From assembly GCA_964035545.1 (NCBI GenBank), contig OZ037768.1, positions 8,030,741-8,094,740 on the forward strand: a stretch of 64,000 bases of DNA, in the 5' to 3' direction. Source of the DNA: Bugula neritina (lineage: Eukaryota > Animalia > Bryozoa). The position numbers and the translations under genes were made by a program. Of this stretch, positions 6,901 to 40,908 are shown piece after piece (the first letter of the stretch is position 1; each line of letters opens with the position of its first letter). Under the pieces are notes generated by a model, which saw nothing but the letters and a program-made list of their open reading frames with translations, made no database searches and had not been told where the DNA came from.

Positions 6901-8633
6901 TTTTCTGTATTAATAAAAACTGGACTAGATATACTTTCACAGCTTTGAAAAATGGTAAAGTAACTCCAAACAACCTAAAGTCTCACTAAATTGTTGCAAA
7001 ACTACTACAGAATGAGCTTTAAAGATTGATTAAATAGGAAATCATATACCTGGCGTCAGCCAAAATACTGACATATCTTTTATTTATATTAAAACTACTA
7101 ATTGCTTTAAGAACCTAAATTATTTACATCATATGATCTTTTGCTTGAAGGTCTGGCATCTTTCTTTGGTGTTGCACTAATGACAGCCGTTGCCATAGCG
7201 ATAGGATACAGACGTAAAACAGATATTAAACAATTTTTCAACAAACATCGCAGGTCTGATAGTTATCAATTACATGTAATTTTAGATTAGCTTTAGTTCT
7301 AGGTACAACTAAAAGATTATAAATCCATGATTCATTTTATACATGTAAAAACTACTTCTTTATTTAATTTTTAAAAGCTCAATTGTTGAGTAACTAGTGC
7401 CTTTTGGAGGTCTAAAGCTTAGGTAAATGAGAGACAATTTCTAATTTAACTTTGAACAAAATCCTAGAAGCATTTTAATTGTTTGAGCTTGGATACTTGA
7501 AAAGGCAGCTAAAGAAAAAAATTTAAAAACTCAATATTGCTTCTCTTCCCATTCCTAGGTGATAAAGCATTAACTAAATAGTTTAAAATAGGATTTTCTT
7601 ATCAAAAATAAAGTCAATATAAATCAGGATGTTTGCTATAACTAAGCTCTGTCATTATATAAATTAGTCATACTTGTTGACCTCTAAAAACAGATCACCA
7701 ATTATCACATATTTTTTGTTTTAGCAAAGAGAATAACTTGAGTCTTCATCAAACTCCACCAGATAAGTCAGCGTCTGCAACTCCTGATAACCTTGCTGTT
7801 CCTAAGCAACCAAAGTATTCAACTACTGCAAGTGAAAATAGTGATGTAACACCTTCAACTAAAGCTGAACCAATTCCCAGCAAACGTAAGTGGGTCATTT
7901 TACTTAACTTAGTAGACACTAGAAATCTTCGATTTTTAGCTATGTTTTATAATTTAGCTGCTAATGAACATGGGTTTTTGCCCAAAACTAGTAAAATATG
8001 AATGAACACACCTAAATAATCAAGGTTCTTTTTAATTTTGCTTGATTTCTCTTTTTTTTCTAATTATTCAGCTACTTTTGATTTCGGAGAGTTTTGTTTT
8101 TTTCGTAACTCTCTGCAATCAAAAGTAGCTGAATAAATAAAAAAAACGTGAGAAATCAAGCAAAATAAGGAAGAACTGATTATTTAAATGTCTTCATTCA
8201 TATTTTACTAGTTTTGGGCAAAAGCCCTTGTTCATTAGCAACTAATTTGTGAAAAACAGCTAAAAAATGGAGATTCCCAGTGTGTACTAAAATAAGTAAA
8301 ATGATCCAAGTGTTTTCTTCTTCTTTTCTATCATATAAGCAATACAATAGTTGTCAAAAAGAGAGGGGTTTGGTTTATGCTCAATGAACCACTTCGATTT
8401 TCACATATACATACTTGCATGCATATATTAAGTTTTTGGCACTCCATAAATACTTCTTTCTAAAATAAGATATATTTGGAAACCTTGTTTTAGCAGCTAC
8501 CTCTACAGAAAAGCCACTAAGCACTATAAATATCTCTCCTCAGAAGGCTTCATCTAGAAGTAAATCTAAGCGGTTAGAGAAGGTTTCCACTTCACCTTCA
8601 GTACCTAAACGCAAAGGATCCAAGGTTAAATGA
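914..8633 (+). CDS. ADAM metalloprotease, tandem copy 1 (membrane-anchored, zinc motif intact)
   Basis: Exons 914-2228, 2960-3115, 3902-3997, 4945-5232, 5709-5954, 6595-6855, 7151-7253, 7725-7885, 8494-8633, all GT-AG and frame-compatible. Signal peptide MLCHNLY..., Cys-switch KKCGT, basic cleavage site [14 protein letters not shown], Met-turn CIM, disintegrin [47 protein letters not shown]. Confidence 0.93.
7892..8307. mobile_element. Foldback/palindromic MITE in last intron of copy 1
   Basis: Two ~200-bp imperfect inverted arms (GGGTCATTTTACTTA...TAAGTAAAATGATCC), flanked by AAGT duplication. Copies 2 and 3 have the empty site CGTAAGTGTTTTCTTC. Confidence 0.9.
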
Positions 8634-13200: not shown

Positions 13201-13806
13201 ATGTTTACCTGAACAGGTAGAACCAAGCCTATCTGGAAATAGAGAGTATAGTTTTTATATTCTGATATATTTTATAGAGGAAGAGTGTGACTGTGGTCAA
13301 CCAGAGTATTGTCAGAGTAATTGTTGTGATCCAACAACATGTAAACTACACAGTAATGCTACATGTGCTACAGGTAAATAATTATTTCAGCTCAAAACTG
13401 ATATGCTGACTATTTCTGTTTATGCTATGTTTGCTTTATAGATTCAGAGACCGGTCAAAGAGTTTAAGATAGTTTATTGCTCAAGATATTAAAGGTCCAC
13501 TCTGGATAGATCTAAAAGCACAAACTGACTATTATTAATAACACGAATAACATAGTATAAAGTATAAACCTTTACAAACAAAGACAAAGCTTATTCAGCA
13601 TATCATCAACATCCCCTTTACAAATCTTTGACAATGTTGAACAAACAAACGAAAAAAAAACTAAACAAAAATTAAGAATTGATACGTGAACAAGTAATAC
13701 GATTTTGTTATTAATAGTCTATAGAAGATTAGCATATTATTACAAGATTGTCTCTCTTGTTAATTTAAAGTACATTATATTATTTTCTGGGTTCGGGCTA
13801 TTTAAA

Positions 13807-13838
<32 letters not shown>

Positions 13839-16800
13839 GTTTATTGTCCGATTGTCTTTGGTCAGATTAGGTATAATTATCTAGTATAGTTCGTATTGTT
13901 CATATTTAGCTGGGGTTTTTGTTTGTCTTGACCGTTGCCATCTAACTGGGGCTGGATCAGGGTTTGTATTCACTTCTGTAGGAATTGCTGTTGCGGCTGA
14001 TTGAATCTGTGTGTCTGGAACAGAATGACTGGAAACTGGGTCATTGGCGCCTGTTGGTATTTCAACTGTAGTCAATGGCTGACTAGCTTCCACATCACTC
14101 AGAGGGCGCAAATCGGCCCTGTTTCGCCTCACAGCCATGTCTGTGTCTTTGTTTGAGACAAGGTATGATCGGTCCGACAGCTGTTCAACCACTCTACCCT
14201 GCTGCCATCTAGTCTTTTGTGACACAAAGTCTCTCAGCAGCACTGGCGAGCCAATAGCCAACTTTGTCAAATCTTTAGCTGATTTATTGTAGCTGCTCTG
14301 CACCACTTTTCTTTTGTTAGCTTTTTGCTGTAAGACATTGTTCTTTGGCATGTCACCTGTAGGAAGAATAGACCTCGTGGAATGCCCAAACATCCTCTGA
14401 GCTGGTGATGAGGTCATCCCTGCAGTCGGGGTATTTCGATACTCTAGCAGAGCCAAATATGGGTCTTCTGCTCTCTTCATCAGCCTTTTGATTATTTTAA
14501 CTGCTGCTTCTGCCTTCCCATTCGACTGCTGATGTCCCGGAGATGAGGTTGTATGGCTGAAACCCCATTCAGTGCTAAATCGAGCAAAGTCGGCCGAGGT
14601 GAATTGTGGTCCATTGTCTGATTGAAGCTGGTGAGGGATTCCATACCTTGCGAAAGTTTTCTTGCAAGCCTTGATTACTGCTCTAGATTGTGTATCAGAT
14701 AGAGGTTCACATTCAAAGAAGTCAGAGTAATAATCTACCAGCATCAAATAATCCTTATGCTTATAGGTTAGTATGTCCATGCCTACTTTACTCCAAGGTA
14801 AGTCTGGTATGTCATGGTTTTGCAGAGACTCATGCTGTTGTAAAGGTGCATCCATTGCACATGTGACACACTTGTCAGTTTTCATTCGAATGTCCTCAGC
14901 CATTTGAGGCCAGAATACCGCATTGCGAGCTCTTCTGATAGTGGCAGCTGTTCCTTGATGGCTAGTGTGAAGCTTGTTGAGTATCTCACCTCTGGCAGCT
15001 ATGGGCACAACCAGTCTAGATCCTTTATAAATAATCCCATCTAGTACTGCAAGTTCATCTTTGTATGAATAGTACGGCTTCACCTCTTCTGGAAGTTGAA
15101 ATAATTTGTTAGGCCATCCTGAGGTTATCAGAGATTGCAGCTGCACCATTACTGGATCATTACCCGTATGCTGTTGGATCAGTTTATAGGTCGCTTTTGA
15201 CACTGGCAGGTCTTGCTTCAGATCCGTTTCGCTTAGGTCAGACATAAATGACTTTAATTGATTAACTGTGAAAATCTGTTCTTCTGATGTATTGTTCTGG
15301 GGTTCACCAACAGGAGCGCGAGACAGCATGTCTGCTGTAACTTGTTCAGAACCAGGTTTGTAGTGCACTTTAATTTGGTATCTTTGCAGAGCTAATAGCA
15401 TTGATTGCAGGCGTTTAGGCGCTTTGTTCAGAGGCTTCTTAAATATTGTTTCTAAAGGGTGGTGATCCGTGTGTACAGTTACATCTGGGTTTCCAAAAAC
15501 GTACTGATCGTATTTCTGCATCCCATAGACGATGGCCAGAAGTTCTAGTTCAATAGGTGCATAGTTTTTCTCACTATCTGTCAAACTTCTAGAGCCATAG
15601 CTTACTGGTTGCCCCTCTTGTAAAAGTACAGCTCCGAGCCCTTCTAGACTTGCATCAGTCTGTACAACTACTGGCTGGTTCATGTTGAAGTATTTGAGTG
15701 AAGAAGTTTTCGTGATGAGTTTTTTAATCTCATCAAACGCTCTCTTTTGATCTTGGCCCCAGACAAACTCTTCCTTGCTTACACCAATCAGCCGTCTTAG
15801 TGGTTCACATTCAGCAGAGCAGTGAGGTATGAACTTTGATAGGTAGTTCACATGACCAAGAAACCTCTGTATTTCTTCACTGTTGACAGGGGGCTTCATG
15901 TCCGTTATGGCTCGGATTTTATTAGGATCGGGCTTCACTCCATCTTTTGTTATCAAATGACCAATATAAGGTAGCTCTTCTAGAAGAAACTTACATTTTT
16001 CTTTGTTTAGCTTGAGATTAACCCTACGTGCTCTGGCTAAAAGTTTTTCGAGCTTTTGGTTATGGTCTTGCACTGCTTCCGCTTGAGTAGCTCCTTTCCC
16101 ATAAATTAGGATGTCGTCTGCTACTACAGTTACTCCGTCGAGACCGCTAAGTGCATCTGAGAGTCTCCTCTGGAACTCTTCAGGACTTGAGGACAACCCA
16201 AAAGGCATCCTCAGCCATTTGTATTTGCCAAATGGCGTCCAGAATGTAGTTAAATCACTGGACTTTTTGCTGAGCTTTATCTGCAGAAAGCCGTCCTTGG
16301 CATCACACAATGAGAATACTCGAGCACCATCCAGCTCGCTAAGCACATCGTCCAGCGTCGGCATTGGAAAATGATTTCTTTGAATCACTTGGTTTAGGTT
16401 GCTTGGGTCTAAACATACTCTCAGTGTGCCATTGGGTTTTCTCACAGCCACATGATTGTTTATCCAAGCTGTTGGATAGTCTACTGGACTTAAGATACCT
16501 TTCTGGGTGTATGACTGCGATTTTTGTTTGAGATCAGCTACCATCGAGCAATAAAGCAAACTGAATAAGCTTTGTCTTTGTTTGTAAAGGTTTATACTTT
16601 ATACTATGTTATTCGTGTTATTAATAATAGTCAGTTTGTGCTTTTAGATCTACCCAGAGTGGACCTTTAATATCTTGAGCAATAAACTATCTTAAACTCT
16701 TTGACCGGTCTCTGAATCTATAAAGCAAACATAGCATAAACATGGTACCATGAGTGGGGCTTAAAGAAACTAAAAGTAAAGTGTTTGCTGGAAAGAGAGA

Positions 16801-19800
16801 CAACAAACAATACAACTAAAGCAAAAACAACAAAAAATCACAATATCAAGATGAGTATCAGTGTTGACTTTTTAGCCCCCAAGCCTATTCAAGATGGCTC
16901 TGACTTGTCCAACCAGTGGACGAGATTTAAAGAAGAATTTGAGCTATTCCTCACAGCAGCTGAGAAAGCAAATTCTGATGATAAAGTCAAAGTAGCCATT
17001 ATGTTAAGATGCATAGGCCCAAGAGGCAACGACATATTCAAAACATTCACTTTCTCAGATGGTAAATCAAAAGAAGTCTATGCTGATGTTGTGGAGAAGT
17101 TTGATGCTTTTTGTCAACAAGGCACTAATAAGGTAGTAAAAAGACATCAACTGTTATCAACCAAGCAGAATACCATGAACATTGATGAATATGTCACCTC
17201 GCTTCACAAAATCGCTCGAGAGTGTCAACTGGACACAATGTATGACGATTTCATGCTTCAAGCTTTACTCCTGGGCATCAACGATGCCCAACTAAGAAGG
17301 AAGCTATTTGATGATGCCAGCGGGGATACTGGCTTAGGACTAGAAGAAGCTATAAAGAAATGTCGTATTGCTGAGCCTTATCATCTATTTCAATATGGTA
17401 TTCCCCAGGCAAACATCCAATACCTTCAAAAACCTCTGGATAGCTTCCGAGAATGTCATCTAGGCTGGCATTGCTTATTAGGTTAACCCACTCCTCTTTA
17501 ATGGTTATCAAACCGAGCTGAAGAGCGGCCTCACCAGATAGAAGGCTGTGATTTTGTGTCTTGTGCACCAGAAAATACAGCTGCTCTCCAGCTACTTCCA
17601 GTTTGCATCCTCCTAATGCTCGAGTGATAGAACCATCAAACTGCTTTAGTCTTGTCTGGTTGTTGTCAAGCTTTGGCTTACCGAGATCAACAAAATCTTT
17701 GTGATTGAGAATGTTACAGGATGCTCCTGTGTCAATCTGAAACTGTGTCGGTTGGTGACTATCATTCACACTGGCTCTTATAGTTGTCATCAACTTTTTG
17801 TTCTTTCTGACTACCTGTATGCTCAACAACGATTCACTTGAGCCATCACTGTCTTCTTCTACCATGTTTACTTGCTTTTTTGAGCGACATAGAGATCTCC
17901 AATGGTTATACTTTTTGCAGTTATGACACTGGTGACTGTATGCAGGACACTTTCTGGGAGGGTGAGACTGCCCACAGTTGCCACAACTTCCTTTTGAGAA
18001 GTTTCCTGTTCGAGTGGACCTTACTGCATTATCATCATCATCTTTGCTTGGCTTATTAGGCTTCTTTCTGGAACCGATGAACTGCACTGATTCTTCAGAC
18101 TGGATTGCAGCCATGTCATTCCTTGAATTCTCAGCAATACGACATTTCTTTATAGCTTCTTCTAGTCCTAAGCCAGTATCCCCGCTGGCATCATCAAATA
18201 GCTTCCTTCTTAGTTGGGCATCGTTGATGCCCAGGAGTAAAGCTTGAAGCATGAAATCGTCATACATTGTGTCCAGTTGACACTCTCGAGCGATTTTGTG
18301 AAGCGAGGTGACATATTCATCAATGTTCATGGTATTCTGCTTGGTTGATAACAGTTGATGTCTTTTTACTACCTTATTAGTGCCTCGTTGACAAAAAGCA
18401 TCAAACTTCTCCACAACATCAGCATAGACTTCTTTTGATTTACCATCTGAGAAAGTGAATGTTTTGAATATGTCGTTGCCTCTTGGGCCTATGCATCTTA
18501 ACATAATGGCTACTTTGACTTTATCATCAGAATTTGCTTTCTCAGCTGCTGTGAGGAATAGCTCAAATTCTTCTTTAAATCTCGTCCACTGGTTGGACAA
18601 GTCAGAGCCATCTTGAATAGGCTTGGGGGCTAAAACGTCAACACTGATACTCATCTTGATATTGTGATTTTTTGTTGTTTTTGCTTTAGTTGTATTGTTT
18701 GTTGTCTCTCTTTCCAGCAAACACTTTACTTTTAGTTTCTTTAAGTCCTCACTCAGGGCACCATGTTTATGCTATGTTTGCTTTATAGATTCAGAGACCG
18801 GTCAAAGAGTTTAAGATAGTTTATTGCTCAAGATATTAAAGGTCCACTCTGGATAGATCTAAAAGCACAAACTGACTATTATTAATAACACGAATAACAT
18901 AGTATAAAGTATAAACCTTTACAAACAAAGACAAAGCTTATCCAGCATATCATCAACAATTTCAATATAGCATTATGATGCTGATTAAAAATTCCTTGCT
19001 AAGTACTTCATTTATCCACCATATTGTATCACACAGGATCCTGCTGTGACCTTGAGACATGTACTGTTCGTCCAATCTCATACCCATGTCGTTCAGTACA
19101 AGATTCACAGTGTGATCTACCTGAAACATGTGACGGGGATAGTGAATGGTGTCCCATAGACACATACAAACGTGATGGAACTGAGTGTACAAACGTAGAA
19201 CAAGGCTATTGCTATGAAGGAGAATGTAATACCCACAGTTCTCAGTGCCAGCTCATTTGGGGTGTGGAGATTGGAGCAAAGAAGTCAGATGATTTGTGTT
19301 ACAAAGACAGCAACAATTTTAGTATGATGAATCTATACTTTTTGTAAAAGAATTTGTTTGCTGACTACTGTAAAGACAAAGCAGACATGTGTACAACCAT
19401 GAAAGATTTTCCGTTAGCAGTCATACATTGATTAAATCTTTTTTGTGAAAATATGAAAACTCTGCCAGAAATTTAAATGCTCATATACTGTTCCATTCAG
19501 GGAAATGTTTAGATGATAGCTGTGTTGTATTTCTTTGTGTAGTGGGTAATAGTGTATAATCAATTTAGCACATCGTCAGTGATTACAATCAATTCCACAA
19601 TTGGTTGAGCGAGGATAAGACAATATATTTGAAGAAAGATACAATAATAAAACAATTCTGTACTAACTATCAAGTGTTAACTGTTTGCCTGCCTATTAAC
19701 AACTGCGCACGGGGAGGGGGGCGGGAGGGGCCGGGGGAGGGGGGGGGAGCAACCACTATTTTCAATAATACAGTTAAGGTCTCTTCTGATTGGAGGGCTC

Positions 19801-34408: not shown

Positions 34409-40908
<6,500 letters not shown>

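Follow-up and report, generated by a model that had tools for sequence, protein, structure and literature searches.

An inverted, apparently tRNA-Leu-primed copy of its own 5' end in a young Ty3/gypsy retrotransposon of Bugula neritina

How does a retrotransposon come to carry, in the middle of its coding sequence, a reversed copy of its own front end, and could such a copy be turned against the family it came from? These questions are raised by a Ty3/gypsy element with long terminal repeats (LTRs) that lies in an intron of an ADAM gene of the bryozoan Bugula neritina (assembly GCA_964035545.1, contig OZ037768.1). The 64-kb stretch of DNA that was analyzed, here called the window, provides all coordinates given below; the analysis was made from the assembly sequence alone, with the searches for other members of the family covering the 216-Mb assembly. 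The element is probably a single young and defective copy, with an inverted piece of complementary DNA (cDNA) of its own lineage, primed by a leucine transfer RNA (tRNA-Leu), joined into its pol region.

The inverted repeat and its two primer binding sites

The element occupies 5,542 bp (13417-18958) on the minus strand, antisense to the second ADAM copy in the window, and shows all the features by which a Ty3/gypsy element is recognized: two LTRs of 195 bp each, with TG...CA ends and one mismatch between them in the 195 positions, a 5-bp target-site duplication, a tRNA-complementary primer binding site (PBS) beside the 5' LTR, and the characteristic domain order, with gag and protease matched by Pfam in 17353-18720 and reverse transcriptase, RNase H and integrase in 13884-16559. 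The gag-pol region, which in the intact copies is one frame of 1366 amino acids, is split here into open stretches of 473 and 905 codons by an inverted repeat. Positions 16561-17375 are the reverse complement of 18130-18945 at 808 of the 816 aligned positions (seven substitutions and one indel in a global alignment), with 754 nt between the arms; chance is excluded as the source of this similarity, which is far too high. The repeat resolves into two inverted segments with an offset of one base, namely 619 nt at ~100% identity (16757-17375 and 18130-18748) and 199 nt at 97% (16561-16759 and 18747-18945). The arms consist of LTR nt 14-195, the PBS, the leader and 5' gag (~620 nt, with the end of the piece given as gag nt 829), and the inner LTR and the 5' LTR point toward each other.

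Much of this anatomy had been described in a preceding sequence-only reading of the same DNA, which reported a near-perfect inverted repeat of ~815 bp with a 754-nt spacer, a disrupted polyprotein and two convergent LTRs, all in agreement with the present results. Two of its statements need amendment. The arms do include the LTR for the most part, but the inverted copy is devoid of the outer 13 nt of the 195-bp LTR; and the arms are not simply near-perfect copies, half of their differences being at the PBS. The parts of the element are as follows.

13417-13611, minus strand: 3' LTR, with one difference from the 5' LTR and none (100% identity) from the LTRs of three further family copies
13881-16559, minus strand: pol open frame (reverse transcriptase, RNase H and integrase; Pfam RVT_1, RT_RNaseH, Integrase_H2C2 and rve), severed from gag-protease
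16549-16560, no strand: 12-nt filler at the junction of pol and the inverted arm, absent from an intact copy
16561-16742, plus strand: inverted LTR copy (LTR nt 14-195), with one difference from the 3' LTR and two from the 5' LTR, and with AATAAA at 16681-16686
16743-16760, plus strand: PBS of the inverted arm, complementary at 18/18 positions to the 3' end plus CCA of tRNA-Leu(UAA)
16761-17375, plus strand: inverted leader and 5' gag, with the gag ATG at 16851
17376-18129, minus strand: spacer flanked by the arms, made up of the host element's protease and the remainder of its gag; the loop of the hairpin
18130-18745, minus strand: right arm, formed by the leader and 5' gag that belong to the host element itself, delimited by the arm alignment
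18746-18763, minus strand: PBS of the host element, of the family type, complementary to the 3' end plus CCA of tRNA-Met(CAU) with one C-to-T change
18764-18958, minus strand: 5' LTR, with TG...CA ends, delimited by LTR comparison

In the gap separating the pol stop from the 3' LTR, there is also a long run of T at ~13811-13834, which is poly-A on the strand of the element.

Half of the eight positions at which the arms differ fall within, or directly after, the 18-nt PBS that follows the LTR. The PBS of the family is complementary at 18/18 positions to the 3' end plus CCA of elongator-type tRNA-Met(CAT) genes and is found in this exact form in 11 copies, with five more, the host element among them, being one base off. 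The PBS of the inverted arm, in contrast, differs from the Met-type at five of the 18 positions and perfectly matches tRNA-Leu(UAA), for which a single tRNA-Leu(TAA) gene was matched (C9:1542840; L032:1501-1583, minus strand). The Leu-type PBS is flanked by the LTR and leader sequences of the family, with one base missing directly after it, and an assembly-wide search detected it in no other family copy. Outside the tRNA genes and this element, the sole near-match to the 3' end of tRNA-Leu is at ~1501-1515 of another locus (L033, C4:13665817-13668831), in a place that resembles a protein-coding exon rather than a PBS.

The two PBS strands of a provirus have different sources, the tRNA primer for the plus strand and the genome for the minus strand, and alternative priming hence becomes visible as a changed PBS (PMC6450007, PMC4549124). 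Because the PBS is copied from the primer tRNA, the Leu-type match indicates that a reverse transcription of its own, with tRNA-Leu(UAA) as primer, produced the arm; judging from the sequence, the arm is a separately primed cDNA, with tRNA-Leu(UAA) in the place of tRNA-Met(CAU), and neither a DNA copy of the neighboring arm nor a fold-back created by the assembler. The sequence-only reading did not catch this change of the PBS, which is the feature that reveals the origin of the arm. The base missing after the PBS would fit a one-base realignment in the second strand transfer, with the 3' C of the strong-stop DNA pairing.

Alternative priming of the same kind has been described for human and simian immunodeficiency viruses (HIV-1 and SIV), in which the 18 nt of an unusual primer tRNA are left in the PBS of the DNA product (PMC6450007, PMC4549124). 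In the viral case, however, the lysine tRNAs involved differ by a single base, whereas tRNA-Leu(UAA) and tRNA-Met(CAU) yield the five differences seen here, and in Bugula both types of PBS are retained side by side. The presence of the usual PBS next to one rewritten by another tRNA, in a single lineage, is direct natural evidence, from a bryozoan, for alternative tRNA priming.

The Leu-type PBS also stands against two other explanations of the inverted repeat. One of these is an assembly artefact, whereby a palindromic chimeric read or a collapse would have made the repeat. Inverted chimeras do occur in long-read and amplified libraries, but fold-back artefacts have identical arms that meet directly, whereas the arms here show eight differences, including those that make up a perfect PBS for another tRNA; moreover, 35 nt of pol are lost, 12 nt of patterned, templated filler stand at the junction, and there is no other locus able to supply a Leu-type arm. 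An artefact is therefore extremely unlikely, and we reject it. The other explanation is a fold-back at the DNA level, in which a template switch during replication or repair, after integration, would have copied the 5' end in reverse, with subsequent drift. The geometry of an inverted duplication, the microhomology and the filler are all compatible with such an event, and inversions of this type are known (PMC7467729). A copy made in this way would nevertheless carry the Met-type PBS, which random drift cannot convert into an 18/18 match to another tRNA while leaving the flanks unchanged, and the end of the arm 13 nt from the end of the linear cDNA would be a coincidence. Given the Leu-type PBS, the deletion at the junction and the patterned filler, this possibility is rejected as well, its probability being very low.

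A separate observation on the PBS of the family concerns its lone CpG, which has been hit independently in two copies, by a C-to-T change in the host element and a G-to-A change in another copy (L069, C4:13671727-13676832). These changes hint at deamination, and hence methylation, of these elements.

Junctions, lineage and origin of the inverted arm

Compared with an intact copy, the element is missing 35 nt of the linker between protease and reverse transcriptase, which are replaced by the 12-nt filler and the inverted arm. The string at the filler junction can be assembled from two short LTR stretches in sense, 10 nt as found at 16677 and 11 nt as found at 16720, which are oriented like the inverted arm and overlap each other by 5 nt and pol by 3 nt; this filler reflects repeated short priming and copying. 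The opposite junction, at 17375/17376, shows 2 nt of microhomology. Templated insertions are known at breaks (PMC11724301). No inner target duplication was seen at the inverted arm, where the host element lost 35 nt instead of gaining a 5-nt duplication.

These junctions bear on a further explanation, namely that a complete tRNA-Leu-primed sibling integrated antisense into the element and was then reduced by two deletions. Antisense self-nesting of an active LTR element is on record (PMC11624286), and an arm that is derived from cDNA and belongs to the same lineage would be accounted for. However, the inner LTR is without its outer 13 nt, the inner target duplication is missing, and there is templated filler on one side and a junction in mid-gag on the other, so that an insertion and two deletions would be needed in place of a single joining event. 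In the form of a clean integrase-mediated insertion, this scenario is rejected on account of the missing LTR tip and target duplication; with subsequent decay, it is still quite unlikely.

The family itself is young. The assembly contains at least 14 other full copies, with 96-99% identity and a length of ~4.74 kb (4689-4756 nt, two longer copies excluded), and none of these has the inverted structure. A separate 5-bp duplication flanks each of 12 other copies; the two LTRs are identical in five copies, and in four the gag-pol frame is still a single, unbroken one of 1366-1367 amino acids. The identical LTR pairs and unbroken frames imply that the family moved very recently, as the sequence-only reading had supposed. 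One of the copies (L072, C4:17980386-17989608) stands apart in having 8.8 kb between its LTRs, ~4 kb more than the rest, and six apparent LTR differences when segments of fixed length are crudely compared; another insertion is probably present in it.

With 21 private changes in 4,715 nt when compared with the other family copies, the host element represents a distinct lineage. Five of its private changes are located in the arm region, and two or three of these are present in the inverted arm, too. Two variants are common to both arms and absent from the 14 other copies; for one of them, an exact search of the genome returned only the two arms, with the other base in nine copies. The shared private variants indicate that both arms come from one lineage. 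Outside the PBS, the arms differ at four of 798 positions, two of the changes being private to each arm, which, set beside the single difference in the LTR pair, suggests on these small numbers that the duplication is about the same age as the integration. The U3 comparison, tried as a means to distinguish cDNA from DNA as the source, was discarded: the LTR of the arm is nearer to the 3' LTR, but the sole relevant difference is a private change of the 5' LTR.

The private changes of the host element are unevenly spread, with 12 in the first 1,583 nt (seven of these in the 754-nt spacer) versus nine in the 3,132 nt of the part from pol to the 3' LTR. The greater density near the rearrangement could stem from error-prone synthesis or from chance.

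In the origin that we favor, synthesis of the arm would have been primed by tRNA-Leu(UAA), not by the tRNA-Met(CAU) that the family uses, with the PBS of the arm being the copy of the tRNA left by plus-strand strong-stop synthesis. The resulting partial cDNA, reaching from near the free LTR end of the linear cDNA to mid-gag and supplied by the same parent or by the same particle, would then have been joined, in inverted orientation, into pol, where it replaced 35 nt. The joining could have occurred within the particle, before integration, through template switching, or else by end joining of a captured fragment, with the 2-nt microhomology at one junction and the two-step, LTR-templated filler at the other as its putative traces. 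An arm that ends 13 nt from the cDNA terminus is what would be expected of a nibbled cDNA end. The most likely setting is the particle from which this insertion arose, at that time or just after. An origin before or around integration is favored by the intact outer LTRs and the clean target-site duplication, given that the whole unit could integrate normally, and also by the low likelihood that a cDNA would hit its own closest relative by chance.

By origin, the locus can be grouped with rearranged, dead products of reverse transcription and with captured cDNA. Defective proviruses with internal inversions in the HIV reservoir, which are dead for replication but still integrated through normal LTR ends, offer a possible parallel. 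As for captured cDNA, replication intermediates of the yeast Ty1 element enter chromosome breaks via end joining (PMC11372161). In the captured Ty1 sequences (PMC11372161, PMC1976456) and in those captured at Cas9 breaks in mouse zygotes (PMC4516963), as in the Bugula arm, partial retrotransposon cDNA is end-joined with microhomology or extra bases, and features found only in cDNA are present. The Bugula locus differs in that the recipient is a copy of the same lineage, the piece is inverted and the event possibly preceded integration. It provides evidence that a partial cDNA can be built into a retrotransposon copy.

Several points weigh against this account of the origin and timing. Junctions formed in end joining by a repair polymerase look the same as those formed when reverse transcriptase switches templates, filler made by repeated priming being within the capacity of both types of enzyme. 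The timing estimate is built on very few substitutions. If the event preceded integration, a parent carrying the two shared variants would be expected, and there is none in the assembly; if it followed integration, the cDNA would have to land in its own source copy. Nor does the assembly include a second haplotype of the insertion site, but only paralogous ADAM copies with identity of at most 93%. Finally, a third variant shared by the arms, the C-to-T change in the PBS of the host, had to be set aside because this CpG is mutated elsewhere, too, and the Leu-type PBS has a T in this position in any case.

The predicted hairpin and the prospect of silencing

When 16561-18945 is folded with ViennaRNA, either strand forms 809-811 arm-to-arm pairs, with a predicted energy of -1682 to -1690 kcal/mol compared with about -565 kcal/mol for shuffled sequences. 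A transcript crossing both arms would thus be expected to form a duplex of ~809 bp, a possible substrate for Dicer or ADAR. By geometry, there are three candidate sources of such a transcript: the 5' LTR of the element, the inner LTR, from which a predicted transcript would span both arms and then run into the downstream ADAM exons, and the ADAM precursor messenger RNA. The inverted LTR is in the sense orientation on the ADAM strand, so that ADAM transcripts may be cut off at its AATAAA (16681-16686) without reaching the second arm, and a transcript from the element's own 5' LTR is a likelier source of the hairpin. The proposal of the sequence-only reading that double-stranded RNA would be made from the ADAM precursor or from either LTR is therefore strengthened by the predicted fold but weakened with respect to the ADAM route. 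A genome search revealed Piwi/Argonaute domains at several loci, one Dicer dimerisation domain and ADAR-type deaminase domains, so that the components needed to dice or edit a long duplex are present; the genome search for an RNA-dependent RNA polymerase came out blank, and so did its control search.

A structural counterpart is Mu killer of maize (PMC3440606; Slotkin et al. 2005, as cited in PMC11624286), in which, likewise, part of an autonomous transposon, namely its 5' end with the terminal repeat and promoter, has been naturally duplicated in inverted orientation, in a position to be read through from a flanking gene and with a predicted long hairpin RNA. The resemblance that the sequence-only reading saw in the anatomy, with an inverted LTR, leader and 5' gag placed antisense in a host intron, holds at the level of structure. 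Mu killer, however, arose when the DNA of a DNA transposon was rearranged, and its heritable silencing of the family was demonstrated by genetics, whereas the Bugula locus is an LTR retrotransposon with a cDNA-derived arm and is only a candidate for silencing. A second counterpart is the antisense self-nested insertion of the Arabidopsis element EVD (PMC11624286), in which a copy of the same family lies antisense inside the element, with the LTRs opposed, and which has been proposed as a possible source of hairpin RNA. The EVD case is a complete nested insertion, unlike the Bugula arm of only 815 nt, with the LTR tip missing, no inner target duplication and filler at one junction.

Could the locus be a functional killer, its diced hairpin repressing the family promoter and gag in trans, as Mu killer acts on MuDR? 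Several features would suit such a role: the LTR and 5' coding region that are duplicated in inverted orientation belong to a recently active family, three promoters could drive transcription, the predicted duplex has ~809 pairs, and the genome has Dicer-, Piwi/Argonaute- and ADAR-type domains. Precedents are Mu killer (PMC3440606) and the EVD copy proposed as a trigger (PMC11624286). Set against this are the status of the locus as a lone young one with no sign of selection; the activity of the family, which, with five identical LTR pairs and four intact frames, is not visibly shut down, although the substitutions that separate the hairpin from the youngest family copies are too few to order the events; the AATAAA of the inner LTR, which may stop ADAM read-through; and the tendency of long nuclear duplexes in animals to be edited by ADAR, often, rather than diced (PMC7084138). 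On balance, a killer function is unlikely. It is similarly improbable that the locus, transcribed from its own LTR or from ADAM, would act as a working natural source of hairpin RNA in an animal, with small RNAs against the LTR, leader and gag lowering the activity of the family in carriers. By default, the locus is read as a dead copy with neutral or mildly harmful effects; in structure it may be regarded as a retrotransposon analogue of Mu killer, but it is not classed as a killer locus.

RNA is not the only conceivable product. An open frame of 233 codons (16785-17486) extends from the inverted gag start and continues into the antisense spacer. In yeast, truncated Gag proteins of Ty1 interfere with particle assembly, and a truncated Gag from this frame could, by analogy, do the same.

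The locus is a testable candidate for the gain, in one step, of a hairpin trigger against an active LTR family. If a working hairpin proves true, it would be an animal retrotransposon counterpart of Mu killer, born in one aberrant reverse transcription that recorded a switch of the primer tRNA; if the population includes both carriers and non-carriers, comparing them would amount to a natural experiment on how transposons are silenced in an animal; if the hairpin is inert, what is left is merely a well-documented dead copy. Transposon silencing is apparently unstudied in the bryozoan phylum, a point at which no literature search was aimed.

The insertion site in the ADAM array

At least six ADAM gene units, repeated in tandem with a period of ~8.3-9.3 kb, make up the window, and in a self-comparison of this DNA the exon blocks of different units are 60-99% identical. 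At 14.9 kb, the second unit is longer than the rest, and its extra DNA is the single LTR retrotransposon insertion. The exon upstream of the affected intron ends at 13373 and the following exon begins at 19037, leaving an intron of 116 nt once the element and the duplication are subtracted. The exons that flank the insertion read through the disintegrin domain, with Disintegrin and ADAM_CR matched by Pfam in 19024-19347. At the paralogous position, ADAM copies 3 and 4 have an empty site in which ATTTC is present once; these empty sites confirm the insertion in copy 2 and, together with the exon ends, its location within the intron, where the sequence-only reading had placed it.

13374-19036, plus strand: intron of ADAM copy 2, with GT at 13374 and AG ending at 19036; the paralogous sites are empty
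13412-13416, no strand: left target-site duplication, ATTTC, which recurs at 18959-18963
18959-18963, no strand: right target-site duplication, ATTTC, found as a single copy in ADAM copies 3 and 4

Two further repeats occur elsewhere in the window. One is a tandem run of 8-12-nt units at 39653-40020. The other is a second, much shorter inverted repeat, within the first ADAM unit, with arms of 132 nt (7891-8022 and 8177-8308) that are 85% identical and lie 154 nt apart; it may be a miniature transposon.

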